This document shows positions 24,776 through 47,990 of a stretch of 64,000 nt of DNA, one piece after another. The stretch is taken from assembly GCF_020745735.1 (NCBI RefSeq), contig NC_083431.1, forward strand, positions 8,336,496 to 8,400,495, written 5' to 3'. The translations under genes were made by a program, and so were the position numbers. This DNA is from Hemiscyllium ocellatum. Taxonomy: Eukaryota. Numbering within the stretch: the first letter of the stretch is position 1; every line of letters begins with the position of its first letter. The notes under the pieces are model-generated. The model made no database searches and was not told the DNA's origin. It saw only the letters and a program-made list of their open reading frames with translations.

Positions 24776-24835
24776 TTACTCATCAAAGCTGGTGTTCGGA
24801 GTCAAGGAGCAAGGAGGACTTTTGGGATGGGCCAT
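24776..24835 (-). CDS. PRR11: PRR11 last coding exon
   Basis: tttcag|ATG GCC CAT CCC... reads MAHPKSPPCSLTPNTSFDE*, matching the recalled human tail LAHPRSP...SSFDEQN. Confidence 0.9.
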   Translation of the reverse strand: MAHPKSPPCSLTPNTSFDE

Positions 24836-26714
24836 CTGAAATAGAGCAGAAAATTCATTAACTCAGCTAGCAGCAGATACTTCAAAACATCGGTTAGACC
24901 AGCGCACTACTTTCTTCCTTTGACAAATCAAACAAATATTGGCTTCTTTTCATAAAGGTCAAAGTTCCCAATTTTTTTTTCTGCTGAGAGCAATTCAGAA
25001 ATTTGAGCAGGAACCCCCAAGTGCTGATATTATTGTTGAATTGTTTTCTCAACTTAAGATGATGTCAAGTGAACAGCAACAGAAAATTCAAACAGGGCAA
25101 AATCAATTATTCCTGACCAGAGCAAAGGACTAGGCAGAAAATATATTTCTGAGGGAAAGAATTTTTTCTCCCTCAAAATGGGCACCCTAGCGTTCATGAC
25201 ATTTCAGGACTTGATAACCAAGGAAGGTGCATTCAGGATACAGCCAAATAGGTCACATATTGTAAAAACTGTCTTTTTAAAAACAAAAAAAAATCAATTG
25301 TGGACTGAAATGGAAAAAGGACAGTTTAAAAACCAAGAACTGTGGAAAGGATTACAGTATTTTTTGATAAGCAATTTATTTTAAGTGCAGTTTAAGTGTT
25401 TTTAAATAAAGAATCAACCTGTTCAGTGAGGTTATTACACACGTCTGGAGCAGTTGGGACCTGAATCCAGGCCTCCTGGCACATAGATAGGGACATTACC
25501 ATTGTGCCACAGTTAGTGGAACCAAGGAGTGTGTACAAAGGGTGATTGGTCTGTGAAGTGGTGACCAATTGTTGATGAAGAAGACATGCTGTCTGCCAAC
25601 AACTATGTGATTTACTCCCAGGCAGCTGAGCAGTTTGTGTGTGAATGTTTGGTCAGAAACCAGCGGACCTCCAACAAGGAAGATGCTGTTCTCTTCTTTC
25701 GAGTTAAAAAGCCTCAAGTCTGAAGAAAGTCAGTTTCATTTGTCTCAAAAGTTGCTGCAAGCTGCGGCTTTTAGCCAATAAGTTGGAAATTTTATAAATG
25801 AGAACCTTGCGGTCCATGCATCCTACAAGCATGTAAAAGTAACTGGAAAAGGAAAATTGAACAGCAGTAAAATACTGATGAGTTAAAAACCTGCAGACAG
25901 GAACCATCGAACTGCTATCGCAATCCTTTCTCCAACCTATTATAACCATATGTTATTTGTGTTTGTCTATTTATAATAAATAGTAATTCTTGTTAAATAC
26001 TGAAACCTGGTCCATCATTTCAGTTTACCTTGGTCTAAGAAACAGGTGAATTTGAGAATTTTGCACATATTGAAGGTCAGAATGGCCTACTCCTGCACCT
26101 ATTGTCTATTGATAAAACCTTTAATTGTTGTGATGATTCCAAGAAGAGTAACACTTCATTTCTAACAAACTACCACTGTGAGGTTAACATTATCAACAAA
26201 TCTTTACAGCCCCTGCCACTGGTGTGGGATAAGAGTGGGAGAAATTCCTGGTAAGCCAACTGAAGGAAAGAAATTGGATCCTCTACCACTGCTGTAGGGA
26301 CATAACAAACCGAAAAAAAGGATTGTTCACAGTGCTTCAGAGAGAGAAAGTATGGTAACAACATGCTGCAATTTATTTCTCTACAAGGGAACCCATTAGC
26401 TCACTTTTTAACAAGCTGGAGCAGGGTACTTAAATTTCCTGAGGACAGACATTGCTTAGTGGACACATCGGAGTTTGAATAGAGTCAAATCAGAAAATCG
26501 TCCAGAAAACGGATAGTGCTGCAGCACCACCAATGGAGAAAACATATCTTACAGCTATTATTCAGTCTTCTCAGGTTCTCCATCGAAAGGTAGGTCTTGG
26601 ATTCAATTCCTGACTCGCTGGGGTGACCAGCGAGGTTTCTTCTCCTCAACGTCCCCTCACTTAAGGTGTGGTGACCGTCAGGTTATACTAGCAACCGATC
26701 CTGTTCTTGTTCTC

Positions 26715-27900
26715 TTGTAGATGTGATCTATATGGACTTCAGTAAGGCGTTCGACAGGGTTCTCCATGGGAGATTGATTAGCAAGGTTAGATCTCATGGA
26801 ATACAGGGAGAACTAGCCATTTGAATACAGAACTGGCTCAAAGGTAGAACACAGAGAGTGTTGATGGAGGGTTGTTTTTCAAACTGGAGGCCTGTGACCA
26901 GTGGAGTGCCGCAAGGATTGGTGCTGGGTCCTCTACTTTTTGTCATCTACATAAATGATTTAGATGCGAGCATAAGAGGTACAATTAATAAGTTTGCAGA
27001 TGACACCAAAATTGGAGGTGTAGTGGACAGCAAAAAGGGTTACCTCAGATTACAACAGGATCTGGACCAGATGGGCCAATGGGCTGACAAGTGGCAGATG
27101 GAGTTTAATTTAGATAAATGTGAGGTGCTGCATTTTGGGAAAGCAAATCTTAGCAGGACTTATACACTTAAGGTCCTAGGGAGTGTTGCTGAACAAAGAG
27201 ACTTTGGAGTGCAGGTTCATAGCTCCTTGAAAGCAGAGTTGCAGGTAGCTAGGACAGTGAAGGAGGAGTTTGGTATGCTTTCCTTTATTGGTCAGAGTAT
27301 TGAGTACAGAAATTGGAAGGTCATGTTGCGGCTGTACAGGACATTGGTTAGGCCACTGTTAGTATATTGCGTGCAATTCTGGTCTCCTTCCTATCGGAAA
27401 GATGTTGTGAAACTTGAAAGGGTTCAGAAATGATTTACAAGGATGTTGCCAGGGTTGGAGGATTTGAGCTATAGGGAGAGGCTGAACAGGCTGGGGCTGT
27501 TTTCCCTGGAGCATCAGAGGCTGAGGGGTGACCTTATAGAGGTTTACAAAATTATGAGGGGCATGGATAGGATAAATAGACAAAGTCTTTTCCCTGGATT
27601 CAGGGAGTCCAGAACTAGAGGGCATAGGTTTACGGTGAGAGGGTAAAGATATAAAAGAGACCTAAGGGGCAACGTTTTCACAGAGAGTGGTACGTGTATG
27701 GAATGAGCTGTCAGAGGAAGTGGTGAAGGCTGGTACAATTGCAACATTTCAGAGGCATTTGGATGAGTATATGATTAGAAAGGTTTTGGAAGGATATCGG
27801 CCGAGTGTTGGCAGGTAGGACTAATTGGGTTGGGATATCTGGTCGGCATGGACGGGTTGGAGCGAAGGGTCTGTTTCCATGCTGTACATCTCTATGACTC
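26715..27900 (+). mobile_element. 5'-truncated CR1 LINE (RT and 3' end)
   Basis: GVPQGLVLGP, KFADDTK and RGDLIEVYK motifs with stops; followed by a (TC)n tail. Confidence 0.93.
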
Positions 27901-28358
27901 TCTCTCACTCTCTCTCTCAAATGAGATAGCAGCCATATAGTCTGGTAAGACTTTATGACTTTACCTTTAGTCTGGAGCTTTGAATAGTGGTGGTGCATAT
28001 TTCAATTTTCTTTCCATCACATAGCTTACATAATCTCTCCCACTCTTACCTCCTGCCATTGGCATAGGTTAGAAAGATTTTCTGGTAGATACTTAACTTG
28101 TCTGGCCACATTTTGAACCCATCTTGGCTATCAAATCCTGGAACAGGACTTGAACCTGGAGCTTCTCTTCAGAATCAAGGAATCACTGCATTACAAATCT
28201 TTCCTCCATTAGTCATTAGCTACATACAATCAGCTCTGTTTCTGCAACCCCACAATCCAAACATTTACCAATAACCCCAAGTTTGGATATGTTTGAGTAA
28301 ATTAGATGGGACATTGAATGCTGGGCCAAACAGACTGGCCATGTCAGGCTTAAGCCAA

Positions 28359-28479
28359 CGTTTTGGAGGCTCACTGTTAACTAGTATGGTGACAAAATGT
28401 CTGAAAACAAACCGTCCAGCTCAGCGAGCAAACCTACATCCAGAATCTCAACCTTAGCTACAAATCTTCTCAAAACTTG
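28359..28479 (+). mobile_element. Penelope-type terminal-repeat fragment with 9-bp TSD
   Basis: Same family as 9273-9536. Flanked by TTAAGCCAA (28350-28358 and 28480-28488). Confidence 0.7.
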
Positions 28480-28571
28480 TTAAGCCAAGATTGCTAAGTC
28501 TGGCCGATTCTAGCCTTTGTTTGGTGGAAACAACCTGTCACTACCTAGTAACATCTACTTTAAAACTGCAA

Positions 28572-28678
28572 AGAGATGTGCCAAATAGTTGCCTTGCGAA
28601 ATACCACATCATTTAAAGGAACATTGGCATAATACTGGGCATAAACTATTTCGCAAGGAAACTATTTGGCACATCTCT
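28572..28678. repeat. 32-bp inverted repeat (1 mismatch) with 43-nt spacer
   Basis: AGAGATGTGCCAAATAGTTGCCTTGCGAAATA (28572-28603) versus TATTTCGCAAGGAAACTATTTGGCACATCTCT (28647-28678). Confidence 0.9.
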
Positions 28679-28917
28679 AATACCCGAGCAGAAGAACTGT
28701 TAATTGACAGTTACCTTCTAGCCCAGTAAATGAAGCTACATGGGAAGGGATTAGTGAGCACTCATGGAAAAGTTGGAAGGTAAAAATAAATACTTTTTCC
28801 TTGTATTTTGGGAAAAATAGATTATTTTGCATAGTTCTAAAACATGTTATGAAGTAGTTCATCTATGGGTGGAGGAAGAACATTTGAGGGAAAGCAATTT
28901 AATTGTTTTGCAATTAC

Positions 28918-29011
28918 CTTAAATTTCCGTTTTAGTGCTTGTGTCATAACTGGTGTTAGTCCTGTTCCAGTGTCCCGGTTCTCTTTATGAAGAGGTGTGC
29001 CACCAGGGCTT
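28918..29011 (-). CDS. PRR11: PRR11 coding exon (SPGGTP, KEN box, ALKRKF)
   Basis: 94 nt, gtag|A ... AAG|gtaatt. (R)[31 protein letters not shown] is near-identical to the recalled human PRR11 C-terminal block. Confidence 0.95.
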
Positions 29012-30271
29012 CTACAACCATTATTTCACAGGGTAAGTAATAGTATCCAACACCTTCCCAAAACACATTCTTTCAATTCAAAGTTACTTCTGGCATCATC
29101 TGTTTTATAGAGCAAGGTTCAAATGAATTACCAAGTTTTAAAACAAAAACAAAAAACTGTTGGAGAAATTCAGCACAGGCCTAGCAGCATTTGTGGAAAG
29201 ATAGTACAGAATTTCAGAAACCAGTTCTGCAGAAGCATCACTGGACTTGAAACATTAACTGATTTCCTCTTTCCAAAGATGCTGCCAAACCTGCCGCGTT
29301 TCTCCAGTAATTTCAATGTTTTTGTTTCGGGATATACAGCATCTGCAGTTGCTTTTTTCTCCCCAGGTTTTGAATGTCAGTTTTGATAAATGATGAAACA
29401 ATATTAATTTACAAAACTTCTGTTTCTGCTTCAGGCACTGCTAAGTACTGAGAGGATGGCATTTTAGGAAAAGTAATTTACTCCTCGATAAAAATGGGAA
29501 AGAACTGCGGATGCTGGAAATCAGAATCAAAAACAGAAATTGCTGGAAAGGCTCACCAGGTCTGGCAGCAGCTATCAAGAGAAATCAGTCAACATCTCAG
29601 GTGCAGGGACCCCTCCTAAAATTTTCCAACAATTTCTGAATTAGATTGGCACCTTACTTGGGAAGGAGCCAAACGTAGAAAGGAAAACTTCTGAATAACA
29701 GCAGGCAAGGGAAGACTGTAAAAGTGAAAAGGCTTCTTCTGGTTTACATAATAGAAGGAGCATGGGTATGCCAAAGATATAAAAATCTCCAATGTTTTAT
29801 TTCTAAACAATTGAGCGAGCCAATTTTAACAAGAATGGCAAGAGAGTGCCAGTATTGTTTAGCAGATGTGGAGTAGTGGTGAGACAACTAAGCAAAAGTC
29901 CCTCAAATATTAGTCAGGAACATCCTACTGGAAAGATGGAGAATTTTGGGATAATCATAATCAAACCTGACAGCAATATTCACCCTTAGTCAGCAACTTT
30001 CCAATGTTCACCACCTCAGATCAACTGAATAATGTAGGCTTAATACAGGAAAGAAACCAGTTTGATTAAAACTATAACTCAAGGTGGGAAAAATGTTTCC
30101 AATAATGAGGTGAAAAATAAAAAAAACAATTTTCCAGGTTATGATTTAAATGTCCAGTTATAATATACATGAAAGAAACAGAAGAGAACTTGCTTCATCA
30201 TTTTTATAACGAGTTGGCTGCAATATACCAGAATTACTATAGTTCATTATAGATTGTTTAAAAATATTAGA

Positions 30272-30626
30272 CAGCAAAATTGTATTAACTGGCACCTACA
30301 GGACCAGGAGTGTATCCAATGGATCAAATATTCTGGATAATCTAGAGGTCCATGTATTCAACGTTAAAATGCACATTAAGTTATAGAAATGCAATACAGT
30401 GGGTAAACACATCACTGTTATACTTTATTAACTACACGTCATTCAAATAATAACATAAACAAAACTTACTGGCAGATAGCCTTTTCACTTGCACTCTCAA
30501 CTGCCTACTTGGACATTGCGGAGATTACAATAATATGGTAAACTTTCAGTATTTCAGGCATATAATTTTTTGCCAGTTTATCGAGAGTGACAGTTCATTC
30601 GGTGTCAGTTAAAACAATGTTTGCTG
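30272..30626. mobile_element. Tigger/pogo-like MITE
   Basis: Imperfect TIRs CAGCAAAATTGTATTAACTGGCACC / GGTGTCAGTTAAAACAATGTTTGCTG, with TA on the right flank. Confidence 0.6.
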
Positions 30627-30668
30627 TATTTACAAAAGTGAATAATGACATTTATTAGCTAATATTAC

Positions 30669-30731
30669 CTTTCTATAGCAACCTTCTTTAGACGTTGCCG
30701 AAAATTGACCACAGGTTTATGTGGACTGTTC
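30669..30731 (-). CDS. PRR11: PRR11 coding exon
   Basis: 63 nt, ttag|G ... AG|gtaata, phases 2/2. (M)NSPHKPVVNFRQRLKKVAIE(R). Confidence 0.9.
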
Positions 30732-31254
30732 CTAATTAAGAACAAAGAAAATCCAAAAATTGAAGTTAAATTGAGGCAATTCTTCATTTAGATACGACCT
30801 TGAAATTTGGAATATTATGCAGACACCATAATTGTACAGCTAGTCCTTTAAAAAAAAATTGAAAAAGGCATCCACTTTTGACAAGATTTGAACCAATAAC
30901 ATCTTTTATCTTTGGCTCTCATTTCTAATTAACAGAAAAGTTCAAACTTAGAAGATCAAATCTTCATGGAAAAATAAGTTCACACAGAAGTATTCAACTT
31001 GTTACTTTGAGAAACAGAAGTAAACTTTGTTCAAAGCATAAAGCAAAATCATTACCATAGTTTGAGTGGGTCCCATAAAAGTTAATGCAATAAACTTCTT
31101 GCTGAGAGCTCTGACGATTAACATTTTGAAAACGTTGTCTTATTCAGCTATAATTACACCAAACATAAACAGTGTAATATTGTTTTGATGCATTGTTCAT
31201 TATTAAAACTTGCAATTCAGGGTGTGATAAAGATTTCCATCTGTGTCAGATAAT

Positions 31255-31590
31255 TCAAGTTCCACTCCAGGGCACTGAGGACATAATCTTGGATGACACT
31301 TCTTATGCAGTACTGAGGAAATACTTTGCAAGCAGAACTGCTGTACATTAGATGAATCATTAAACTGGTGCCTTGCACACCCTTGAACACCTCCCAATTA
31401 TTACCATTAACATTTATTTCTCAACTAGTATCTCTAAACAGGGTTTCTAGTCATAATCATATTGTTGTTTGTAGGATCTTTATGTGAAAAGGGCTGCAAG
31501 ATTTAAAATATAACAGACTGAACACATTTCAAAAGTACCTGTATTTTGTTATAAACCCTTGTCATGAAATATTATGTAAATCCAAGTCTT
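31255..31590 (+). mobile_element. SacSINE1/Deu-type SINE remnant
   Basis: TGACAC...TGCAGTACTGAGG, ACATTTCAAAAGTAC and AAATCCAAGTCTT motifs shared with the other copies. Confidence 0.6.
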
Positions 31591-31793
31591 CATATTTTCT
31601 ACTTTTTCCACAAATGCAAATGTTCAATTTGGAAATAAAAACCTTCAAAACTAAAGATTTTAACACTTGCTTAAAAGCATATTGCTGATTAATAATCATA
31701 CTGAAATGCTACATATAATTGAAATAATGGTTATTTTGTTACACTATTTAGGGATCACAAGATCATTGTTACGAAAGGACCTTACAGGCTTAC

Positions 31794-31900
31794 ATCATTT
31801 TTGCTGGTTTCTGTAGTTGGTTAGCTTTTGTCTGGAAATTAAAGCCTTGTAGATCAGAAATTGTGACTAAAGGAGACCTTTTCTTTTCTGGTGTATTCAT
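31794..31900 (-). CDS. PRR11: PRR11 coding exon
   Basis: 107 nt, ttgcag|ATG ... AT|gtaagc. MNTPEKKRSPLVTISDLQGFNFQTKANQLQKPAKM (recalled human RNPLVTVSDLQ). Confidence 0.9.
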
Positions 31901-32289
31901 CTGCAAACAAAGAATGCATCGTAGTACTTCAGACAATAACAATGAAGTAACATGAACATCCACACAACCGAACTTCCAGCCACATCAATGGTTAGGAATA
32001 TCTGTAACTTATTGGACATATTATGCAAAGTTTAAAAATATACACACAGCACAATTCTGAAGTGAAAAATCTTCCCGTTAAATATCATTTTCATGATCTG
32101 GCCAACCAGAGATAATTATTTGTTTGCAATTATGGTCTATAACTTAGCTAAAACTTGTAATCATTATTTTGCTAATTACTTTGATACAAGTAATGCAACA
32201 GCAGGACTAATTATCCTCTGTTCCTTCACATATTGTTTTGAAAATTCCAGAAAGATTTGCTTGAATGGAAATTTGTACACAGTTCTCAC

Positions 32290-32388
32290 CTCTAGTTCAT
32301 TTACTTTGTTCTGCGTCTTCCTCAGTTTCACTTCAAGTAAATCCTTTACCGTCACAGATAATGATCCACCTATCCTCTCAGGATCAGT
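32290..32388 (-). CDS. PRR11: PRR11 99-nt exon, duplicate copy B
   Basis: ttcatag|ACT ... GAG|gtgaga, phase 0/0. TDPERIGGSLSVTVKDLLEVKLRKTQNKVNELE. Confidence 0.88.
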
Positions 32389-32463
32389 CTATGAATGCCA
32401 CAAAGTGTTAGAAAGCACAGTCTGTAATAATAAAACAAATAGCCTCATAATATTAACACCAAC

Positions 32464-32562
32464 CTTTTTTATTTCAAATCCGTCTGTAGTCTTCCTTAGT
32501 TTTACATTAATCAAATCTTTCATAGTTATGGACAGTGGTCTGTTAATTTCCTTAGACAGCGC
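32464..32562 (-). CDS. PRR11: PRR11 99-nt exon, duplicate copy A
   Basis: ttcatag|GCG ... AAG|gttggt, phase 0/0. ALSKEINRPLSITMKDLINVKLRKTTDGFEIKK. Confidence 0.85.
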
Positions 32563-33069
32563 CTATGAAAGCAAGGAGACAGCAATGAAAAAAATCTACA
32601 AGTCACATTATTATTTTGTTTAGAATTGCTTCAGATTATGCTCAAGATAATCGCTGTCATATTTAAAACTTCCGGAGTTGAGAGATTGACATTTGTTGGC
32701 TCCAAATTAAGCAACAGACAAGAGATTACAATGAATTTTAACATTGGTGAAAGTGAATAACAATGAAAGTTAGGAGTCGTATATCAACCAGATTTCCATG
32801 GCTTAGTACAAGGAAAATTACCCTAATTTTACAGGATGAAGTAAGTGAAGGCAGAAAGTGAATTTTCTCTTTAAAAGCTGTCCACAGTAATTTGTCACTT
32901 GCAGCTTCAATGCAACCAAATATCCCATAATTTCCTCAGACTCTTAGTTAATCACTCAATTTTCTCAATATTAGTTGTTCCATCCTAGTTGCTATTTCAT
33001 GATGATTCTGTTGCAAGAGAATTGGCATGGAATGGCATGTTGTGTCAAAACATTTTAACTCTCAGATTT

Positions 33070-33382
33070 GGGCGGCACAGTGGTTAGCACTGCTGCCTCA
33101 CAGTGCCAGAGACCCAGGTTCAATTCCCGCCTCAGGCGATCGACTGTGTGGAGTTTACACATTCTCCCCTTGTCTGCGTGGGGGTTTCCTCCGGGTGACC
33201 CGGTTTCCTCCCACAGTCCAAAATGTGCAATTCAGGTGAATTGGCCGCGCTAAATTGCCCGTAGTGTTAGGTGAATGGGTAAATGTAGGGGAATGGGTCT
33301 TGGTAGGTGGCGCTTCGGCGGGTCGGTGCGGACTTGATGGGCCGAAGGGCATATTTCGACACTGTAACTAATCTAATCTAAT
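33070..33382 (+). mobile_element. HE1-type V-SINE
   Basis: Colinear with 2817-3130, including the (TAATC)n tail. Confidence 0.9.
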
Positions 33383-34061
33383 TCAAGAAAACACCATGAA
33401 TTTTCTTAGTTCCCAACTCCCTGCTAATGGGAAATGCTCTCTCCTCTTCCTGTTTTCCAACTTTGACAACAATGGAACAGAATGGATTTGGGCTTGAATC
33501 TGGTCAAATGGTGGCAATAATAATAACTCCTCATTTTTCAAATTCTGCCACTGCATACTTCATGGCCTCAGCTCAACCTGACCCACAATTATACCACTGT
33601 TGCTTCACAATCCCAGGGTCAAAATCCTAGAGCTTTCTTCTTAACAGCACTGTGGATGTACCAAAATCACATGGACTAAGTGGTTCGAAAAGTCAACTCA
33701 GTGATGTCATCCCAAGGGCAATCTGGGATAAACAGTAAAGGCTGGCCTCGTCAATGATGATCACATACTCAAGTCCTAGAATGATACAGCACGAAAATAT
33801 ACTGTTCGGCTTAACTCGTCTACAGAAGCAAAGGGTCATTGTGAGAGTTGACTCCATGAACAGATGCAGGAGTATCAACAGTGGATCAAAGTTGACACTC
33901 TGCAGCTTTGGACTTCAGAGTTAAAGCATCTTAGAGACTGCTTCCTCATCCTATAACTGAGATTAGATTCAAGTATATAATTTATGTAGCCATCTACATC
34001 ACATTAGCATCTTCTCTAAACTCAAGATTTAGAGTTAAAAAACCTTAAATATTGCAAGTTC

Positions 34062-34272
34062 AGAAGTCATACAACACCAAGTTATAGTTTAACAGGTTGT
34101 TTTGAAATCACAGCCTTTCAGAGCACTGCTTCTTCAGCCGATGAAGTCACTTCAACTGATGAAGGAGCAGCACTCCAAAAACCTGCGATTTCAAATAAAC
34201 TTGTTGGATTATAACCTGGTGTTGTGTTACTTATGATCTTGTCCACAGAGTCCAACACTGTCCATCATGGCT
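34062..34272. mobile_element. Palindromic Penelope-type insert (further family) with degenerate hammerhead core
   Basis: Inverted arms ACAACACCAAGTTATAGTTTAACAGG / CTTGTTGGATTATAACCTGGTGTTGT. CTGATGA-AGGAG-CAGCA-CTCC-AAAA at 34156-34180. Confidence 0.6.
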
Positions 34273-34422
34273 GAAGTGACTCAAGTAATAATTCTACAAA
34301 AGTTCTGTAATTATTTGAAAACAGAATGAAAATTTCTTGATGATTACAAATAAGCATTAAGACTGCAATTTACATCTTAATTTTTATTTTAAATCTCATT
34401 CAATAGCTTAACACACACTCAC

Positions 34423-34668
34423 TTGCAAAGAATTTTCACTCCTAGTTTTCCGCTGAATCTGCAGTGGTTTCTGCACAAACACAGAAGGTGGTGGTAATGG
34501 AGGAGGGGGTGGTGGAGGTGGAGGCTGGGGAGGAAGGGCTCCAAATGGTTTTTGTGGTAAGGTACGACTCATGATTGGCTGGACTGGCCACACTGGTATT
34601 TTTGTGGGGCCTGGAGAGAAATCAACATATTTTCGATAGGAACATGAATCTTTTGAATTATTAGACTC
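34423..34668 (-). CDS. PRR11: PRR11 proline-rich coding exon
   Basis: 246 nt, ttacag|GAG ... CAA|gtgagt. ESNNSKDSCSY...LPPQPPPPPPPPPLPPPSVFVQKPL...SLQ. Confidence 0.92.
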
Positions 34669-37407
34669 CTGTAAGAGATAAAAAGAGAAAAATTCAAGGT
34701 ATTAGGAACTTTTTTTGGGGGGATGTGGGATAGGGGAGGTATTTAAAACTACCAACTGACATTGCCCATCAATATACACAAACACAAAACATTACACTGT
34801 ACTGTGTAATACAATTAATTATTCTATTTATTGTGCAAATATATTCCTGTTAAATTTACACATTTGGTGCAGCCAAAACCTAAATAAGTTTTACAAATTT
34901 CCAGACAAAAACAATTAAAAATAAAAATAATAAAAATAATGAATTATGCAAATATGAATTGGTGTGAGACATAATGGAGAATGGAAAGTTCACATTTTGG
35001 GGATCTAATGACAGTCTGAATCAAGGTTACTTTTGCATTGATGTGCACACCAAACTACTTTGGATTCAGTGTTGACTTGTGTTCACAATCTTGCAGAGCA
35101 TACGTACATGTTCCTTACTAACCCTGCTCATGTACATGACACTACATTTACCTGTATTATAATCTGCCAAAATTATGGGCAGTTCCTCTCAACCTTCATC
35201 CAGTTAAGATATAGATTGAGAAGAGTAAAATGTCATGAGTGACTGATTCCCATGCAGGTCTGCTGTCATTAATAACAAATATCTGCATTCAGGAATGCTA
35301 TCAATTTCTCGACCAACCCAAAATTCACTCCTACTCTCATATGATGTTAATCTTTTTGAATAGCCTATTAGGCTATTAGCAGCTTGACTTTTGAAAGGCA
35401 GAGTAAATATTTTGATCAGATCATCTGCCTCTGCTAAGGCTAATAATTTCCTCAACAAATTTAACAAGACACTATTTTCCCCCTCAGAAATCATGTTAAG
35501 TGTACCTAACCTCTGGTGTTGAGGTGTTCAATAATACATCTGCAATAATCATATCTAACAACATGCCTTCAACAAAAGCTAATGACAATAGGCATATAAA
35601 TTTTGTGTTTTGACTAATAAACTCAATAACTGTACCAGTTCAGCTTTTCTTCAGTCCATGGGAACAATCCTGGACCTTATAAAGTAGTTAAATATATTAA
35701 ATAGTGCAGGCTCCCCTTTCTTTGAATTTATCTAACATAGCTCAATCAGGACCAACAGTTGGATACGTTCAGAAAACCCCTTATTCCAACCTGGATTATG
35801 TCAGTATTTATTTTCATACTTTCAACTTTAGCATCAAAAATACAATGCAAATCAATATCTTGATAACATCACCTTCTATGGGAATACATGCAAAGTAGCC
35901 AATTAAAACCTGTGTTATTTTGTGGAACCTACTCAAAGGACTCAATCTCTTTGTGTAATCCTAGACACATAGACTTCAGAACATTATCAAGATCTATAAA
36001 CAAATAATGCAGAACATCTACTTTAATTTAAGGGACATTTCAAGTGGCAAAACATTCCCTCAGTGGATACAGATCGACTACATCACAAAAGATAGATTTT
36101 CAAATTGACAAAGCCAGTACTTTATCCACCAGTAGTAGCCTATTCCAGGAATTAGTGAATAAGAATGATTAAATGTGCAGCTGAGCTTAACATTGAGTTT
36201 GCATATTCAGGTTTTGCATGAAGTAATTTTAACCATTTCCCAAAACACTGAACACATCCACTCAAAATTTCCCCCTCTCAAATTACAATAGCTTCAACTT
36301 ATTATCCCCTCTTCATAGCTGTTTTCATCTCTATCTTTTCATAAACATAATATAATAGTACACAATATGATTTCCTGACCAATATATCCCTCATCCATTT
36401 TTACACTCATACCTGTATACAGGTTGGCATTCAGATTTAATTCGAAATTTACTTTCCCACTTTGTCAAGTCTTTTTGCAGGCAATTAAAAAGTGCTTTTC
36501 TATTCTAACAACAAAAATTTTTATTTCTTCACTTAATTGGCATCATTTACTAGAAATCAGCATTTTCAAGCCCTCAAAGATAACTTATATATCAGCATTG
36601 CACAAGGACATCAAATATCTGCTGCTATATGCAAGTCCAATTAGATCTATAACCCTTTGACATTACTCTGTTTTCTATTATTTAGCCAATTTATAGAGGT
36701 TCCACAGATTTGTGCTCCTTGAATATATTTTTACTCATTATATACATTTTTAATTACTACACATCTAAAAACTACTCTGTTTACACTATAGAATTAAATG
36801 CTAATAAGACTCTAGTATCTGGAGGTGAGAGGAGAGAGTTTTAAAAAATATTTGGAGGGATATGCGCCAGGGACAGGCAGGTGGGACTAGTTTAGTTTGG
36901 GATTATGTTCGGCATGGATTGGACAGACCCAAGGGTCTGTTTCCGTGCTGTATGACTCTATGAATCACGTCTCGATAATTCTAAAAACATAGGTTTTTTT
37001 TCTAATGTAGCTTGTTAGGAACAGCATTGCAAACACAAACTTCAACTGCAGTGTCCTTTAGTCTTATTTGGCCCATTAGCTTAAGAAATACATGATGTTT
37101 TTGAAAATGTTGTAGCAGAGTCATTTAGATCTTGATTTTTACTTCTCTAGAGCTTGGTGATGGTTTCTGTAGAGAAAGTTAGCTGACAATCTTAATATTC
37201 ATGACACATTACTTAATCATAGAAACACTGGTGATCCAAATTGTGGAAATTTTCTATTGAGTCTAATGATTTGATGATGCTTGTTATTTGTCCATGTGTT
37301 TTCACCTAACACAAGGATTTCAACATTTAGTAAACAGAAGCATTCTATATTGTGGATACACTGCACAAAACATATCCTGATTGAGGTGATCCATTTACCA
37401 AGTTTAC

Positions 37408-37530
37408 ATTGCAGATTTCTTGCAGTTGTACTAGCTTCATCTCAAGTGCCTCAATATGTTGTCGTAGTGCATTCAGTTCCCGTAAGTAAACACGAGAAGG
37501 AAATAAAATGTCTTTCATTATTTCTAAACC
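37408..37530 (-). CDS. PRR11: PRR11 coding exon (coiled coil)
   Basis: ttacag|GGT. GLEIMKDILFPSRVYLRELNALRQHIEALEMKLVQLQEICN (recalled human SLEVLKDTIFPSR...KLQE). Donor AAT|gtaaac; a second in-frame donor lies 9 nt further, so the 3' edge is uncertain. Confidence 0.9.
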
Positions 37531-37999
37531 CTGTAAACACAGAAGAAACAAATCATTGGCAAAGCAATAAGATACAATTGTTTCATTTTTGATTCATTTC
37601 AATTGCTGGTCAGTCAAAATTAATAAGCCCTGGGTTTCAGCCTCAAAGCGTATTGAATTGACTGACTGCAATTGAATGGCACAAAGGGTAATACAACAGA
37701 CTTAGTTATCGTTACAATCAGGAAAGGGGAGGGGGAAGGATGGAAAAAAGGAGAGAGCCATGACTAATATGGTAAAGATGGTGTTAGATTAAATGAGAAG
37801 GCTACGACAGTTGCAATCCTCAGGATTGGTAAAATTTTAGAATCTAGTAAAGAAGGGCCAAGACATTGTTAGACAAAAAGAGAAGAAAACAGGATCGTAA
37901 AACAGCCAGAAACATAAAAACACATCATAAAAGCTTCTCTAAGGTATGTAAATCTGGAAAGGTGTTCAAAGATAGATATGTACAAGCAGAAACAGGAGA

Positions 38000-38486
38000 T
38001 CAAAGTTTGTGAGAAGATTTGTAGCGCAGGTGCTCGTTGTTGTGGTTCTGCTCGCCGAGCTGGGAATTTGTGTTGCAGATGTTTCGTGCCCTGTCTAGGC
38101 GACATCCTCAGTGCTTGGGAGCCTCCTGTGAAGCGCTTCTATGATGTTTCTTCCGGCATTCATAGTGGTTTGTCTCTGCCGCTTCCAGTTATCAGTTCCA
38201 GCTGTCCGCTGCAACACTACTATTATAGGACAAGCCAAACAGAGAACAGCCAGGGAATTCCTAGAGGCATGGCACTCATCCACAGATTCTATCAACAAAA
38301 CACATCGACCTGGATCCAATATACCGGCCACTGCAGCAGACAGCTGAAACTGAGAACCGGAAGCGGCAGAGACAAACCACTATAAATGCCGGAAGAAACA
38401 TCACAGAAGCGCTTCACAGGATGTCACCTAGACAGGGGACGAAACATCTGCAATACAAATTCCCAGCTCGGCGAACAGAACCACAA
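38000..38486. mobile_element. Penelope/Poseidon-type insert with inverted terminal repeat, GIY-YIG tail and 13-bp TSD
   Basis: Plus-strand peptide NTTIIGQAKQRTAREFLEAWHSSTDSINK. Minus-strand hammerhead-like GCA-CTGAGGA-...-GAAAC-ATC-TGC (38075-38114). TSD CAGAAACAGGAGA (37987-37999) / CAGAGACAGGAGA (38487-38499). Confidence 0.8.
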
Positions 38487-38689
38487 CAGAGACAGGAGAG
38501 TTGAAAATAGAGAAATAACAGTGAAGTTGAAGTCCTGTGTGTCTATCTTCAGGGAAAGAAGTATCTCTGAAATAATTACGATGAAAGGCTCTCATGAATT
38601 GTGGATGATATTTGGATATTGCAATGTTTTTGCTGAACAGATATAGTGATTTTCTATAGCATGGGGTTGCAGAGGAACACAATTGTCGT

Positions 38690-40060
38690 ATTATAGCAAA
38701 ACGACCTGAAGTGTTGGAAAAGATAGTTAGAGATGGAGGTTCACCAGTGCATCTACTATCAAAATTCTATTAATTTTGCATTGCTGGCTGAAGATTAGAA
38801 AGTTGCAAGAGTTTGTTAAGTGAGAAAGAAAACAAAAAACTACCCTTAAGTCTGGCATCAGGAGGGAAAATACAAGAATCTATTATGGATGTGATTACAG
38901 ATATGAAGAGAACAATTGTCTGATATGGCACAGATGAAGCAGATTTGAGGGGGAAAAGCTTGATTTTTTTTGTGAGGATGTTGCTAGCAGAATCATTTAT
39001 ATATTTGTAAAGATTAGTCCCATAAATGACACAAGTAAACAAAATTAAAGTGCATAAGATCAGAGCTCATACACGAGCAAGGATTAAGGATTGGTTAACA
39101 GGCAGAAATCAGGTAAAGATAAATGGATGTCTTAATTTTGGCAGTTTGTAATGAGTACAGTACAGTAAGAATCAGAGCTTGGGCATGTGGTGTTCACAAT
39201 TTATCAATGATTTGGGGACCAAAAATAATATTTTCAAGTTTGCAGGTAATATAACATTTGTTGGGAATCTAAGTTATTTGAGGCCTGGGGATATTTAGAT
39301 GGGTTGAGTGAGTGGACAAGAGCACAGGAGATGGAAGATAATGTGGATGAATGTGAGGAGCTCCGCTTTGGTAGGAGGAACAGAGATGCAGATTATTTAT
39401 TGAATGATAAGAGATTGGAAAGTGTTAATATCCAAGGACACCTCAGTGTCCTTGCTGGTATGCCACTGATAGTTAGTATGCAGATACAGTAAGCAATTCA
39501 GGAATCAAATGTTCTTGTCAGTCTTGATTGCAAGAAAATTTGATAACATAAGAACATAAAGGAGTAAAGAAGTCTTGTTTCAATTGTATAGTACAATGGA
39601 GAGATTGCATTTGGAATATTGTGTGTAGCTGTGATCCCTTTGCCTAAGGAAGGATATACTTGCCATAGAAGGAGTACGATGGAGATTCACTGGATTGTGA
39701 TGGTGAACTGTCCTATGAAGACAGATTGGGAGGCTGGGCCTGTATTCTCAGGAAGTTGGAACAACATGACAGAAAGGACAGTCCCCCAGCTATGTGGTCT
39801 AGAACCAGGGGACACAATTTCAGAATAAACAGCAGGCAATTTGGACTTGAATCAAGGCAGAACATCTTCACTCAGTGATGAGTTATTAGAATTCTCTATT
39901 TAGGAGGGCTACAGAAGTTTAGTCATTAATTCAAGATAGCAAATGATAGACTGCTAGCTATTAATACATCAAGGAGTATGAGGATTACATGCAAATATGA
40001 TGCTGAAGTAAATGATCATCCACGATCTAGAACGGGAGAATAGGCTTGAAGGTTTGACAG
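38690..40060 (+). mobile_element. Highly degraded CR1 LINE
   Basis: Remnants of RT motifs (GATTGGTTAACAGGCAGAAATCAG, TTCAAGTTTGCAG, LSEWTR...NVDECEELRFGRRNR). Boundaries approximate. Confidence 0.65.
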
Positions 40061-40347
40061 CCTGATCTTCTACTTCTTAATACTACGTGACCACTTATTG
40101 TAATTTGATTCAAAACCTCTTGCATCTCTACTCCCACAGCCTATATTCTAAAATTTTCAATTTTCCATTGCATCTGCGCCACTTATATATATTGTAGAGT
40201 ATTTTAAAAATACTAGAGAATATAAATTCAAAAATGAACCTGCTTAGAGTAGGGATTTAAGGATAAATATTTTAAATGGTGAATAGCCTGCAAATTTAAA
40301 TCAAACTTGAAGTCTGGGATATTGAAAGGAAGATGGGGAAGAGAAGG

Positions 40348-40572
40348 GTTGAAAAGTGTGGTGCTGGAAAAGCGCAGCAGGCCAGGCAGCATCCAAGGAG
40401 CAGAAGAATCGACATTTCAGGCATAAACCCTTCTTCAGGAATTCTGAAGAAGGGCTTATGCCCGAAACGTCGATTCTCCTTCTCCTCGGATGCTGCCTGG
40501 CCTGCTGCGCTTTTCTAGCACCACACTTTTCAACTCTGATCTCTAGCATCTGCAGTCTTCACTTTCTCCTAA
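40348..40572. mobile_element. Palindromic Penelope-type insert with hammerhead cores on both strands and 12-bp TSD
   Basis: Centre TTCTTCAGGAATTCTGAAGAA. Plus core CTGAAGA-A-GGGC-TTAT-GCCC-GAAAC-GTC (40444-40471); minus core CTGAAGA-A-GGGT-TTAT-GCCT-GAAAT-GTC. Perfect TSD GGGAAGAGAAGG (40336-40347 / 40573-40584). Confidence 0.88.
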
Positions 40573-41124
40573 GGGAAGAGAAGGATCAAGCTTTGAAGAG
40601 ATTTTCACCCCAGATTGTGCTTATTCACCTACAGTGCATCGGGTACTGTCTGGCTCATGTAAAAACTAAAGTACACAAGAATGTGAGAAGCCAAAGAGTT
40701 CTCAGAAACAGGACTCTGGGGTCTTGAAACCATGGAGATTGGAGCATGAAGTCTCCAAGTTGGGATGGAACGGCTGAATTCTAAAGATGGAGAAGGAGAG
40801 ATATGATCAAACTGTGTGCTTGAGCATCTAAGAGGCTTGCAATCAATCAGCCTCATCAAAAACTATTTTGAAGAGGTAACTGAAGATTCTCAGATCAAAC
40901 TAACAAGGAATCATTTTGAGGCAGAAAATTTGAGAGATTTTGTGACCACCAGGTCCCAGTATACAAAATAATTTTAAAATGAAAACTGCAAAATCAAACC
41001 TGCTTAAGGTGTTCACATACAGAATTATAGTCAATTGCTGGAAAATAGGTAAAGTCACAACTGGCTGTGGGAAATCAAAATAATCTTTAACATGTGAATT
41101 AGAGATCTAATTTTGCATTTATAC

Positions 41125-41278
41125 CTGATTAATGTTGTTCAGCCACCAATTGCACAAGGACGAAACTACAGCTTTAAGAGGATTCAGCACATTCCTCACA
41201 CTCACTAAAGAAACGAGCCCAATAGGAACTGGTTCATGCTGGGAGGAGTTGCTATTAGACACTGGTGCTTCTTTCTTC
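41125..41278 (-). CDS. PRR11: PRR11 coding exon
   Basis: 154 nt, tccag|G ... CAG|gtataa, phases 2/0. KKEAPVSNS...VRNVLNPLKAVVSSLCNWWLNNINQ (recalled human IRDAIKLW...YSWCQNCITQ). Confidence 0.85.
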
Positions 41279-42231
41279 CTGGATTTAAAACAAAAAAGAA
41301 ATGCAACGAAACCATGCATCCTGCAACTGGTCCACAAAGTAAGAACAAATATTAATGTCAAATACTTTATTTGTACTAAGTAGCAGCAGGCAAGTCTTGA
41401 GAAATGTTGCACATTGTCACATACACTCAGGTAAATTGGGACATAACAAATTTACATTTCTATAATTTCTTATGCATCTTCAGGATGCAAAGGACACTTC
41501 ACAGTCAATGAAGCACATTAGATTGTGGTCAATGTTGTAATGCAGAAACACAGTAACCAATTGGCACATGAAAATACATTAGAAAAAGTAATTAGATAAA
41601 TTATCAAACAATTTTAGTGATGCTGATTGAGACACTAATGACTGCCAGGACATCAGGAGAACATCAACCCCATTCTTCAAATTGTACCAATCAAGAAGTC
41701 AAACTGGAATTTGGTTGATACCTAATCCAAATGTGCAATACTACGTTAAAACTGTACTGTGGTGTCAGCCTAGACCGAGATCCTTCAGCCATCACCTAAC
41801 AACTATTAAACTGAAAACTTAAACAATTCATTAGCAATTCCCAAAGTGGATTGGAACCATTTGAATCAGGTATGTTCTGGGCAGTGGGAAGACCACTGCG
41901 GTTAGCAGAAGCATTCAAAGTTAAGATCCAAATGTCATCATAACTGAACAGGGTGGGGTGCAAGTGAACAGAAATTTGGGGCTATGGTGGGGGAAGAGAA
42001 AGAGAAAGAGAACTAATGATCAGATGTGTCATTGTCTATAACAGTTATCAAACCAAAATCAATTGGGGGATCTTTTTACGGAAGTTATAAATACTAATTC
42101 AATACATTTCTTTGTGGGTGGACAGAAGACAATAAAGGAAATTAATATTGTTCATTCACAGTATAATTTTCCAAATTATTCAACCATTGTAACAAGCTAG
42201 CCTTGCTAATTAAGGTCAGAGAACTGCTCAC

Positions 42232-42383
42232 CCTGCTGTTTCAGCAGCAGTTGGCTTCGTCTTGTAGACATTCCTTTTGTTTTTTGCAAGCAGACGTCGC
42301 TTACTATTATTCCATGCTTTTTCCATAGTTTGCCGTTTTCTCATGATCTTCCACTTCCTGCGACGCTGACTCAACCTGAGCAT
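42232..42383 (-). CDS. PRR11: PRR11 first coding exon
   Basis: Acceptor ctgtag|TC ATG. MLRLSQRRRKWKIMRK... (recalled human MPKFKQRRRKLK). Donor GG|gtgagc. All ten coding exons splice to 1197 nt (398 aa plus stop). Confidence 0.88.
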
Positions 42384-42475
42384 GACTACAGAAGAAAAGT
42401 TATAGAATGCTAAAATGCTGTGTTGCAAAAATCAAGCACCTTAAATCTGGATATTGCTGTTTCAAAACACTCAAC

Positions 42476-42741
42476 GGCAGCACGGTGGCTCAGTGGTTAG
42501 CACTGCTGCCTCAAAGCACCAGGGGTCCAGGTTCAATTCTCACCTCAGGAGACTGTACATGTGGAGTTTGCACATTCTCCCCATGTCTGAGTGGGTTTCC
42601 TTCACAATCCAAAGATGTGCTGGTCAGGTGAATTGGCCATGCTAAATTGCCTGTAGTATTAGTCAGGGATAAATGTAGGGAAATGGGTCTGGGTGAGTAG
42701 CTCAGAAGGGTCTATTTCCATACGTAGGGAATCTAATCTAA
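42476..42741 (+). mobile_element. HE1-type V-SINE (internally deleted)
   Basis: tRNA head, V-domain and (ATCTA)n tail. Confidence 0.85.
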
Positions 42742-43209
42742 CTGATAAGTACTGGTTGACCAACAATAACAATGTTGGGATATTCAACTTTGCAGAAAAG
42801 AGATTCCAGGAAGACTTGCAATTCCACTACAGCATCGCATTGATCCCTTTGGGGGGTTGAGGCTTTTTGTCATTCATTCCTGCATCTCCTAACAACACAA
42901 CTTTTATCAATGCCGAGCTGAAACTGTGCTCCACCAGGAAATGCATGAACATGTCAGATCAGTGGAATTACGAGAACTTATATTCAAGTTCACATTAAAA
43001 ACACTGTCCTAGTCAATATTCATCTCTCAATTCACATCTAAGAACAGAGTACTTCGCCACTATTATATTACTGTTGCTGGAGCTCGCTCTGTGCAAATTG
43101 GCTGCGTTTCCAGCTAACACTAATGACTAAACTTCAACTAGTACTTTATGCATCAGGCACTTTGGGATGTCAAAAGGTCATGAAAGATGTAATCTAAATG
43201 CAAGTTTTG

Positions 43210-45420
43210 GAAAAATTATATATTGTGAGGACAACAGTGTAGAACTCCAAAATGACATTGACAAGTTAGTGGAGTGAGCAGATAGGTAGCAGATGAGGTT
43301 CAATCAGAGAAATGCAAGGTGATTCACTTCGGTTCGAAGAATATTGAAAGACAATACAAAATAAAGTGTACAATTCTAAAGGAGATTCAGGACCGGGGTA
43401 CCTTGATTTTTGTGTGCATAAATTATTGAAATTATTAAATTATTAATAAAGCATACAGTGTTCTTAGCTTTATTAAGGCAGTATAGAGTATCAGAGCAAA
43501 AAGATGATGTCGAACTTACACAAGACACTTGTTAGACCTAGCATATTGTGTATGGTTGTGGACATCACATGATAGGAAAGAATACATTGGAGAGCGTGCA
43601 AAAGCAATTTACAGTATAGTTTCAGGAATGGGAAATTTCAGTCATGAGGCTAGATTGGGACTGATCTTGCTGGAGAGGGGAAGACAGGAGGAAATTTGAT
43701 AGAGGCTTTTAAAAATCATGAGCAGACTGGATAGAGTAGAAAGGGAGAAACAGTTCCTGCTCATAAAAGGTAAAAGTACGAGGAAGACAAATTTAAATTG
43801 ATGTGTAAATGATGAAAGATGATGTGAAAAAATATTTTTCACGTAGCAAGTAGTTAGGATATGGAATGCAGTTCCAGGAAATGTGGAACAGAGGGGTTCA
43901 ACTGAGGCATTCAAGAGAGCGTTGAATGATTATTTGAGTAGAAATTGTGTGCAGGGGTATATGGGAAGGCAGATGATTGACATTAAGTGTGGGTGCATTA
44001 GGCTGAATAGCCTCCCTCTATGCTATAACAATCCTGTGAAATTTTTCTTTTATTTCTTAAATGAAAATCTTTCAGACTTTGGAAGCAGGTTCATAGTTCC
44101 TTGAAAGTGGAGTCATAGGTCGGCAGGGTAGTGAAGAAGGCGTTTGGTAGGCTTGCCTTTATTAGTCAGTACATTGGGTATAAGAGCTGGGAAATAATGC
44201 TGTGGCTGTACAGGACATTTGTAAGGCCACTTTTGGAATAGTGCATTCAATTCTGGTCTCCTTGCTATAGGAAATATTTTGTAAACTTGAAAAGGTTCTG
44301 AAAAGATTTACAAGGATGTTGCCAGGGTTGGAGGATTTGAGCCATAGGGAAAGGCTGAATAGCCTGGATTTATTTTCCCTGGAGCATCGGAGGCTGAGGG
44401 ATGACCTTATAAAAGTTGATAAAATCATGAGGGGCATGGATGGGTAAATAGTCGAGGTCTTTTTCCAGGGTGGAGGAGTCCAAAACTAGAGTGTTTAGGT
44501 TTAAGGTGAGAGAGGAAAGATTTAAAACAGACCTAAGTCACACCTTTTACATTGCATAGGGTCGTACATGTATGCAATGAGCTGCCAGAAAAATGGTGGA
44601 GGCTGATACAACTATGACATTTAAAAAGCATCTGAATGGGTAGGAAGAGTTCAAAGGGATATGGGCTGAATGCTGGAAAATGTGCCTAAATTAATTTAGG
44701 ATATCTGGTTGGCATGGATTGAGTTGGATGAAGGGTCTGTTTCTGTGCTGTACATCCATGTGACTCTCCAACTTAAATTGTACAGCAATATAATAAAAGT
44801 CCCAAATCACTTCACAAAAAAGTTATGAAACAAAGTGTGCCATTGTACCATTCAAGGTGGTATTAGACCAAGTAGCTTGTATGGAGCATCAAGAAAGAGG
44901 AAATGAAGATGGAGAAGTAGCAAATTTTAGGCGGGGATCTCTAGAGTTTAGGGCCCAGGCAGCTGACAAATGGAGGTGGCACATTTGAGTCCTGGGGTTG
45001 AGAATGTTGATGAGTGATTGAATAAAATGTATCTTGAATGTCTGATGTTTAAAGGAATGAGCAGATCTCATTGTAACAATTAAAATTCTGAGAAGGTTTA
45101 ACAGGGTAGATGCTGAAAGGCTGTTTACTGTGGTTGAAAACTCCAGAACAGAAGGTGCTTACTTTCAGGTTAAATGGTTAGCCCTTTATGATTGAGCTGA
45201 GGAGACATTTTCATTTAAATGTTTTAAATCTTTACTCCAGATGTAGATGTTCTGTTTTTGTGTATATTCAAAAACTAAATTTGATATTTTTGGAATCAAA
45301 GGAAATCATTGCTTATGGTGAGTACATGAGAAAGTGCTACAGAGGTCAAAAATCAGCTCAGATCTTAGCTATTGGTGCACCAGACTCAAGGGGTTTCATG
45401 GCATACTCCTACACCTATGT
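43210..45420 (+). mobile_element. Cluster of CR1 LINE 3' fragments
   Basis: Repeated RT C-terminal and 3' UTR motifs (GGCTGAGGGATGACCTTATA; GAAGGGTCTGTTTCTGTGCTGTAC) homologous to 26715-27900. Confidence 0.8.
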
Positions 45421-45779
45421 CATAGAGTCATAGAGATGTTTAGCATGGAAACAGACCCTTCAGTCCAACCTGTCCACGCCGACCAGATGTCCCAACTCAA
45501 CCTAGCCACACCTGTCAGCACCCGGCCCATATCCCTCCAAACCCTTCCTATTCATATACCCATCCAAATGCCTTTTAAATGTTGCATAAGTTTATTTGGA
45601 GGGGAATAACCTCAGCTTCTCCACATAAAGACATTTCATCCTTGGTGCCATTCTACTCAGTACTTCTCAAGGGCAATAAATGCTGGTTCAGCCACTAAAA
45701 ACCCAAATACCAGAAATTAAAAAGCAAAAGCTCCTACCATCAGCAGTGTGATTTTACCATTTTACTTTTTAGTGAAAGC

Positions 45780-47140: not shown

Positions 47141-47990
47141 ACATGACACCAAAACTGGAGGTATTGTGGACAGCAAAGAATGTTACCTCAGATTACAATA
47201 GGATCTTGATCAGATGGGCCAATGGGCTGTGGGTGGCAGATGGAGTTTAATTTAGATAAATGCGAGGTGCTACATTTTGGGAAAGCAATTCTTAGCAGGA
47301 CTTGTACACGAATGGTAAGGTCTGAGGGAGTGTTGCTGAACAAAGAGACCTTGGAGTGCAGATTCATAGCTCCTTGAAAGTATAGTTGCAGGCAGATAGG
47401 ATAGTGAAGACGATATTGGTATGCTTTCCTTTATTGGTCAGAGTATTGAGTACAGGAATTGGAGGTCATGTTGCAGCTGTACAGGACATTGGTTAGGCCA
47501 CTGTTGGAATATTGAATGCAATTCTGGTCTCCTTTCTATCAGAAGGATGTTGTGAAACTTGAAAGGGTTCAGAAAAGATTTGCAAGGATGTTACAAGGGT
47601 TGGTGGATTTGAGCTATAGGGAGAGGCTGAACAGGCTGGGGCTGTTTTACCTGGAGCATCAGAGGCTGAGGGGTGACCTTATAGAGGTTTACAAAATTAT
47701 GAGGAGCATAGATAGGATAAATAGGCAATGTCTTTTCCCTGGGGTCAGGGAGTCCAGAACTAGAGGGCATAGGTTTAGGGTGAGAGGGGAAAGATATAAA
47801 AGAGACCTAAGGGGCAACATTTTCACTCAGAGAGTGGTACACGTATGGAATGAGCTGCCAGAGGAAGTGGTGGTACAATAAAAAAATTGAAAAGGCATTT
47901 GGACGGGTATATAAATAGAAGGGATATGGGCTGAGTGCTGGCAGGTAGGACATCTGGTCAGTATAGCCAGGTTGGACGGAAGGGTCTAAT
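47140..47990 (+). mobile_element. 5'-truncated CR1 LINE
   Basis: Highly similar to 27000-27870. QFWSPFYQKDVVKLERVQKRF...RGDLIEVYK. Confidence 0.92.

Follow-up and report, generated by a model that had tools for sequence, protein, structure and literature searches.

In its PRR11 gene, Hemiscyllium ocellatum carries two adjacent exons of 99 nt each, which in our view most probably (a probability of roughly 0.8) result from an ancient tandem duplication of one symmetric exon, with both copies being kept and the downstream copy being used as an optional cassette. The exons, termed c1 (upstream) and c2 (downstream) in the following, are located in a window of 64,000 nucleotides, i.e. the whole stretch of DNA that was analysed. 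An earlier note on this sequence had described two phase-0 99-nt exons that are separated by a 75-nt intron and both have a ttcatag acceptor, and this anatomy is confirmed on the window sequence. The features that are relevant here are listed below.

24776..48329, (-) strand: whole annotated coding region of PRR11, 11 coding exons with GT-AG introns, relatives being PRR11 orthologues
34423..34668, (-) strand: PRR11 coding exon 5, 246 nt, phase 0-0, with the poly-proline tract directly upstream of c1
32464..32562, (-) strand: PRR11 coding exon 6 (c1, upstream copy), 99 nt, phase 0-0, 33 aa corresponding to residues 297-329, core S-I-T-M-K-D-L-I-N-V-K-L-R-K-T
32389..32463, (-) strand: intron between c1 and c2, 75 nt, donor gttggt, acceptor ttcatag, ending in an in-frame TAG
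32290..32388, (-) strand: PRR11 coding exon 7 (c2, downstream copy), 99 nt, phase 0-0, 33 aa corresponding to residues 330-362, core S-V-T-V-K-D-L-L-E-V-K-L-R-K-T-Q
31794..31900, (-) strand: PRR11 coding exon 8, 107 nt, with a degenerate related motif, P-L-V-T-I-S-D-L-Q-G-F-N-F
30669..30731, (-) strand: PRR11 coding exon 9, with the last motif, F-R-Q-R-L-K-K-V-A-I-E, continuing into R-S-P-G-G-T-P of exon 10

The PRR11 gene and its neighbourhood

An 11-exon GT-AG model built from the window translates exactly into the annotated 469-aa proline-rich protein 11 of H. ocellatum, XP_060703740.1 (P0015), every segment of which is 100% identical to the window in a tblastn search. This bears out the earlier naming of the gene as PRR11. 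Both 99-nt exons are part of the annotated model and lie within a run of coding exons, 4 to 7, that are all phase 0-0. The relatives of the protein are likewise named PRR11 (E values from 1e-138 to 1e-269), in line with membership in this orthologue group. Downstream of PRR11 and on the same strand, exons of SMG8 are found at 16215-17786 and 4794-5708, an arrangement that matches Stegostoma and alligator.

The first annotated coding exon (48128-48329, (-) strand) adds 67 N-terminal residues as compared to other shark PRR11 proteins, which begin at M-L-R-L-S-Q-R-R-R-K-W-K, a site within exon 2. Either the annotated start of H. ocellatum PRR11 is doubtful or this exon is an alternative first exon within the GC-richer promoter region. 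The window also contains mobile elements: a pair of LINE ORFs that overlap each other, coding for an Exo_endo_phos endonuclease domain and an RVT_1 reverse transcriptase domain, respectively, is situated between the two large SMG8 exons (11634-14182, (+) strand), a reverse-transcriptase fragment (26858-27433, (+) strand; RVT_1, E 1e-15) lies in the last PRR11 intron, and a short interspersed repeat, recognised by its similar ORF translations, occurs twice in PRR11 introns (at about 33027-33253 and about 42407-42645).

Two tandem 99-nt exons

The peptides encoded by c1 and c2 are identical at 13 of 33 positions, 11 of which fall into the 16-residue stretch L-S-x-T-x-K-D-L-x-x-V-K-L-R-K-T, so that the peptides and the identity given earlier are reproduced exactly. 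At the DNA level 52 of 99 nt are identical, with a saturated pS of 0.71 and a pN of 0.41. The use of differing synonymous codons at conserved residues, which had been pointed out before, holds for 9 of the 13 identical residues. When aligned without gaps the two peptides reach a BLOSUM62 score of 64, as compared to 19.4 +/- 3.9 and a maximum of 39 in 3000 shuffles (z ~11). The two exons are thus adjacent, equal in length and phase, and similar beyond chance, i.e. they show the features by which a tandem exon duplication is recognized. The related motif in exon 8 reaches no significant similarity to c1 and c2 on its own in the shuffle test.

The splice signals of the two exons are alike in part. 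Both c1 and c2 are preceded by the ttcatag acceptor, and their donors read AAG/gttggt (c1) and GAG/gtgaga (c2). The polypyrimidine tract is long in front of the c1 acceptor, whereas it is weak and interrupted by purines in front of c2.

Distribution among elasmobranchs and amniotes

Two strong copies (50-70 bits each with an HMM of the units) are present in at least one PRR11 isoform of 13 aligned elasmobranch species, comprising sharks and rays. Sharks with both copies are Heptranchias, Cetorhinus, Rhincodon, two Chiloscyllium species, Hemiscyllium, two Scyliorhinus species, and Mustelus; among rays and skates both are found in Rhinoraja, Amblyraja, Mobula, Narcine, and Hemitrygon, and additionally in isoforms of Hypanus sabinus and Mobula hypostoma. 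In the 13 species each copy retains its own conserved flanks, E-E-I-x-R-P-P-S-I-T ... K-T-A-D-R-F-E for c1 and D-G-P-x-S-V-T-V ... R-K-T-Q-N-K for c2.

All of the 102 amniote PRR11 proteins, in contrast, contain a single strong copy (24-39 bits), which in 101 of them scores higher with the c2 model than with the c1 model (mean margin 7.6 bits) and which MAFFT aligns to c2, leaving a gap of 33 residues opposite c1. In alligator this copy is encoded by one 99-nt exon (L012:6854-6952), and no second copy is found in the introns that flank it. As the one amniote copy resembles c2, c1 is the extra unit relative to amniotes. Otherwise amniote PRR11 is much like the shark gene, sharing the exon order, the SMG8 neighbour, the succession of poly-proline tract and 99-nt exon (I-T-x-K-D-L-L-x-V-K-L-K-K-T-Q) and the downstream elements V-T-V-S-D-L-Q, L-K-K-V, and R-S-P-G-G-T-P; it differs in having one 99-nt exon instead of two, the 33 additional residues of elasmobranch c1 coming after the poly-proline exon and before the conserved copy. 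Hence, a 99-nt symmetric exon is common to cartilaginous fishes and amniotes and is present twice in elasmobranchs. Human PRR11 had been said to have a single such segment, which is in keeping with the mammals and other amniotes retrieved here. The idea of an extra unit in the lineage of H. ocellatum stands as far as the comparison with amniotes is concerned, but the unit is not specific to this species, being found in 13 of 13 aligned elasmobranchs.

These relatives were gathered by a search seeded with skate PRR11, which returned sharks, rays, birds, reptiles, and mammals, i.e. the comparison covers elasmobranchs and amniotes, no PRR11 of holocephalans, bony fishes, amphibians, or jawless fishes being among the sequences retrieved. 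On this basis the second copy may have been gained on the elasmobranch or chondrichthyan stem, or it may stem from an older duplication that was lost in the amniote line. A region-limited search with the two-copy segment returned only sharks among 46 candidates, missing even the rays, and is thus uninformative as to other vertebrates. When a profile of both peptides was compared with 1.84 billion representative sequences, it retrieved a single PRR11 cluster, in which two stretches matched, a fragment from a skate, and two repeats that match by chance; the skate PRR11 used as seed had likewise been matched in two stretches by this profile. Our literature search found no description of a PRR11 exon duplication, the feature being implicit in public gene models.

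Conservation of the locus and decay of c2 in the zebra shark

The order of c1, a short intron of 75-79 nt, and c2 is kept in Rhincodon and in the skate Rhinoraja, and the introns can be aligned (window 32389-32463; L021:12479-12553; L023:16969-17047). Between Hemiscyllium and Rhincodon, i.e. between two shark families, 70 of the 75 intron positions are identical (93%), the intron being conserved at least as well as the flanking exons. Across four species including Rhinoraja 43 columns are invariant, length and much of the sequence being kept in Rhincodon and Stegostoma and less so in the skate. The intron may harbour signals that guide the splicing of the optional exon. Heptranchias has a longer intron of ~800 nt, owing to an insertion between recognisable ends.

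The zebra shark, Stegostoma tigrinum, which belongs to the same order as H. ocellatum, has lost c2. At the corresponding site (L011:23354-23519) the AG of the acceptor has become AA (...cacaa for ...cacag), and the D-L-L codons are missing owing to a deletion of 9 nt that leaves the frame intact; the remainder is ~90% like Rhincodon. The annotated PRR11 protein of this shark lacks c2, which is a decayed pseudo-exon there. The earlier note had named the disruption of one copy in related sharks as an observation that would speak against its reading. This is borne out in part, i.e. for c2 of Stegostoma. From the loss in the zebra shark it follows that two copies are not essential.

Splicing of the exon pair

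In the single gene model of H. ocellatum c1 is joined to c2, and the same direct junction recurs in all elasmobranchs for which the gene model is complete, all long isoforms containing both copies. Pairs of isoforms whose only difference is the 33-residue segment of c2 are annotated in S. canicula (X1/X2), C. plagiosum (X1/X3), C. punctatum (X1/X3), and M. hypostoma (X1/X3), whereas no isoform without c1 occurs among the annotated elasmobranch isoforms. According to the annotation, joint inclusion is thus the default, and in four further species c2 is a cassette exon that can be skipped without a change of frame; both statements are based on NCBI gene models and, additionally, on the sharing of 31-letter words. 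In two H. ocellatum sequencing runs, the RNA nature of which is a guess, all 5 sampled words of c2 are found along with 11 of the 23 words of 32290-32562. The six words beyond the five of c2 must come from elsewhere in this stretch, and about half of all words are missing. This is the pattern expected of c1 and c2 without their intron, although the evidence is indirect.

Joint inclusion, skipping and mutual exclusivity had all been put forward as options for the two phase-0 exons. The gene models agree with the first and, in the case of c2, with the second, but exclusivity finds no isoform in its favour. A mutually exclusive pair, in which the short intron sterically blocks the joining of c1 to c2, is suggested by the mere 75 nt of this intron and by its CTAAC element, which occupies intron positions 53-57 and places the putative branch A, as counted on the sequence, 56 nt from the donor, the distance stated earlier, and 19 nt from the acceptor. 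However, in textbook cases the minimum distance between donor and branch point is ~50 nt, which is less than the 56 nt found here, the full elasmobranch models splice c1 to c2, and no isoform has c2 without c1. We therefore consider such an arrangement extremely improbable, and the exons were rejected as a mutually exclusive pair, since long isoforms carry both copies and short ones lack c2 only. PRR11 resembles tandem exon duplications in general in the adjacency, equal length, symmetric phase and significant similarity of the copies as well as in the annotated optional presence of one copy in the mRNA, but it differs in that the copies, according to the gene models, are used together by default and not in a mutually exclusive manner.

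Age of the duplication and selection

As both copies are present in sharks as well as in rays, the duplication predates the split of the two groups, which occurred several hundred million years ago. Moreover, pS is higher between the paralogues c1 and c2 (0.71) than between orthologues of shark and skate (0.36-0.49), in agreement with the duplication being the older event. The claim that the duplication is old is thus upheld both by saturated synonymous sites and by the presence of the two copies in sharks and rays.

In a comparison of 38 units, taken from sharks, rays, and amniotes, T13, K15, L17, V20, K21, and L22 are invariant, whilst D16, L18, and T25 vary only rarely. Pairwise pN/pS of the whole exons amounts to 0.3-0.7 for both copies. 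In the core of c2 (codons 10-25) 1-4.5 non-synonymous differences per ~36 sites are opposed by 4-7 synonymous differences per ~12 sites, corresponding to a pN/pS of ~0.1-0.3, all of these estimates being noisy as they come from a small sample of 33 codons. The core of c1 is held less tightly than that of c2. Purifying selection on both copies, as proposed before, agrees in direction with the invariant core and with pN/pS values below 1, but with 33 codons the test is weak.

Alternatively, the second copy could be redundant, i.e. invisible to selection and persisting only because elasmobranch sequences change slowly and an in-frame repeat of 33 residues is harmless within a disordered region. 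This would be compatible with the skipping of c2 in annotated isoforms of four species and its decay in Stegostoma, with whole-exon pN/pS values only moderately below 1, and with an intron that is itself 93% identical between two shark families. Redundancy is nevertheless quite unlikely to be the explanation, as six invariant and three nearly invariant core positions are found in both copies throughout the 38 units, the copy-specific flanks persist across 13 species while the synonymous sites of c1 and c2 are saturated, and non-synonymous change in the c2 core is well below synonymous change.

Thus, we favour retention of an ancient tandem duplicate and propose the following course. A single 99-nt phase 0-0 exon of PRR11 would have been duplicated in tandem before sharks and rays diverged. 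This exon encodes T-x-K-D-L-L-x-V-K-L-[KR]-K-T, predicted with low confidence to form a 13-residue helix in a disordered stretch that follows the poly-proline tract. Both copies would have been retained since then, each with its own flank signature, c2 probably being the conservative one with respect to amniotes and c1 the additional 33 residues. The default mRNA would contain c1 and c2, and c2, with its weaker polypyrimidine tract, would act as in-frame cassette in several species, yielding a protein with either two or one strong motif copies; in the lineage of the zebra shark it has been lost altogether. The anatomy of the exon pair, its phylogenetic spread, its conservation and its annotated isoforms are observations, and any functional consequence is inferred from them.

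Relation to WH2 motifs

The earlier note had read the duplicated segment as a WH2-like actin-binding motif. We cannot support this assignment, for there is neither an HMM match nor a structure match, the spacing differs and only the LKK[TV] element can be aligned. If c1 and c2 were nevertheless WH2/beta-thymosin-type G-actin-binding motifs, elasmobranch PRR11 would be a regulator with a poly-proline tract and tandem WH2 motifs, having one unit more than its amniote counterpart. Several observations are in favour of this reading. The motif ends in K-L-[KR]-K-T, which is nearly invariant in the 38 units and corresponds to LKK[TV], and it comes after a poly-proline tract, an order also known from WASP-family proteins. 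For c1 as well as c2, AlphaFold2 (40-sequence alignment, mean pLDDT 54) predicts that the 13 residues [MV]-K-D-L-x-x-V-K-L-R-K-T-x form a helix, albeit with low confidence. In a comparison by hhalign with a profile of eleven WH2 sites from the shark's own genome, x-V-K-L-K-K-T was aligned to G-x-K-L-K-K-V over 10 columns with a probability of 54%, a kind of comparison that, with such tiny motif profiles, is too weak to separate WH2 likeness from MTFR likeness. In addition, human PRR11 is reported to associate with Arp2/3 and to promote F-actin assembly and the formation of filopodia, the latter requiring its proline-rich region 2 (PMC8720695; review PMC9775115).

On the other side, neither the two peptides nor the C-terminal halves of shark and mammalian PRR11 match Pfam WH2 (PF02205) or Thymosin (PF01290) at E values up to 10. 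A scan of the whole genome with the WH2 model yields 16 sites (21.6-42 bits), none of them in the window, and a search of solved structures with the profile of the 38 units returns neither a WH2 nor a thymosin chain at E values up to 10. In the hhalign comparison the upstream helix part is not aligned with the WH2 profile, and the hydrophobic L-L pair precedes the Leu of LKK by 4-5 residues in PRR11 vs. 9-10 residues in the WH2 sites of the same genome, i.e. the spacing is ~5 residues shorter. Our literature search found no paper that mentions both PRR11 and WH2, and it found "mitochondrial fission regulator" together with WH2 in one unrelated review only. A co-fold of the 66-aa tandem with shark actin (residues ~43-375), for which alignments were unused, gave a score of 0.00 and a partner pLDDT of 31 and is evidence neither for nor against binding. 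The PRR11 motif is thus similar to WH2/beta-thymosin motifs in its basic L-[KR]-K-[TV] element after hydrophobic residues, in the poly-proline tract upstream and in being part of a protein linked to actin assembly, but it differs in matching neither HMM and in the distance from helix to LKK. Judged by these comparisons, there is a real resemblance, but it is confined to the LKK[TV] element and does not extend to family membership, and we regard tandem WH2 motifs in PRR11 as unlikely.

As a separate observation on shark actins, the genome of H. ocellatum contains several intronless, intact actin-like ORFs (L007-L010), located on contig C4 beside clustered genes for conventional actin that have two exons each. 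Those of L007 and L008 share ~61-64% identity with conventional actin.

A motif shared with the MTFR family

Another relationship is suggested by the mitochondrial fission regulators. Shark PRR11 is hit by the Pfam model Mito_fiss_reg (PF05308) in a segment that takes in the coiled coil, the poly-proline tract, and c1, with an E value of 3e-4 and 21.5-21.7 bits, i.e. under the gathering cut-off of 26.3, and in the protein atlas MTFR2 is the nearest other family to PRR11 (0.91). The genome of H. ocellatum encodes three MTFR paralogues, the Pfam domains of which end in M-L-D-V-L-K-D-I-D-K-V-K-L-R-S-V, M-M-D-V-L-K-D-M-Q-N-V-K-L-K-V-V, and M-M-D-I-L-K-D-M-N-R-V-K-L. The motifs and the PRR11 stretch with which they were compared are located as follows.

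L013:1639-1716: motif of an MTFR paralogue
L020:1492-1569, (-) strand: motif of an MTFR paralogue
L036:425-502: motif of an MTFR paralogue
window 28918-30731: PRR11 stretch compared with MTFR

A poly-proline run precedes the motif in L013 and L020, and there is none in the part of L036 that was read. In the one paralogue checked for it, L020, the next exon encodes R-S-P-G-G-T-P ... A-L-K-R-K-F, matching the C-terminus of PRR11. The two families hence have an architecture in common that consists of a poly-proline tract (on the MTFR side in L013 and L020), K-D-x3-V-K-L-[KR], and R-S-P-G-G-T-P ... A-L-K-R-K-F. By its position the motif in exon 9 of PRR11 is the counterpart of the MTFR motif. As a comparison of profiles restricted to the motif is weak (probability 24%), the link to MTFR rests on this architecture. 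MTFR1, MTFR2, and MTFR1L (PF05308) resemble PRR11 in the K-D-x-x-x-V-K-L-[KR] core and, in two of three cases, in the preceding poly-proline run; they differ in that MTFR genes have one copy of the motif and PRR11 an array, and the Pfam score of PRR11 is sub-threshold. Taken together, these similarities suggest that the PRR11 and MTFR families are related and that the K-D-x3-V-K-L-[KR] core is a module common to both, of which PRR11 carries an array, with one more unit in elasmobranchs. No paper joining PRR11, MTFR2, and "paralog" was found in our literature search.

One may go further and speculate that K-D-L-L-x-V-K-L-K-K-T of PRR11 and MTFR is an unrecognised compact relative of WH2/beta-thymosin. 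PRR11 would then be a multi-motif actin assembly factor with a poly-proline tract, the number of its actin-binding units in elasmobranchs (one or two strong ones) being set by exon duplication and cassette splicing. We give this idea only a small chance of being correct.

Implications

Exons that were duplicated in tandem and of which one is optional are a common phenomenon, and the case of PRR11 changes no general principle. In PRR11 itself, a protein associated with cancer and with poorly defined domains, the duplication marks ~13 residues that have been protected by selection for several hundred million years. The presence of the motif in mitochondrial fission regulators suggests one shared peptide module in both families. 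Finally, with their cassette isoforms and a zebra shark that has lost c2, elasmobranchs offer a natural contrast between PRR11 with one copy and PRR11 with two copies of this motif.
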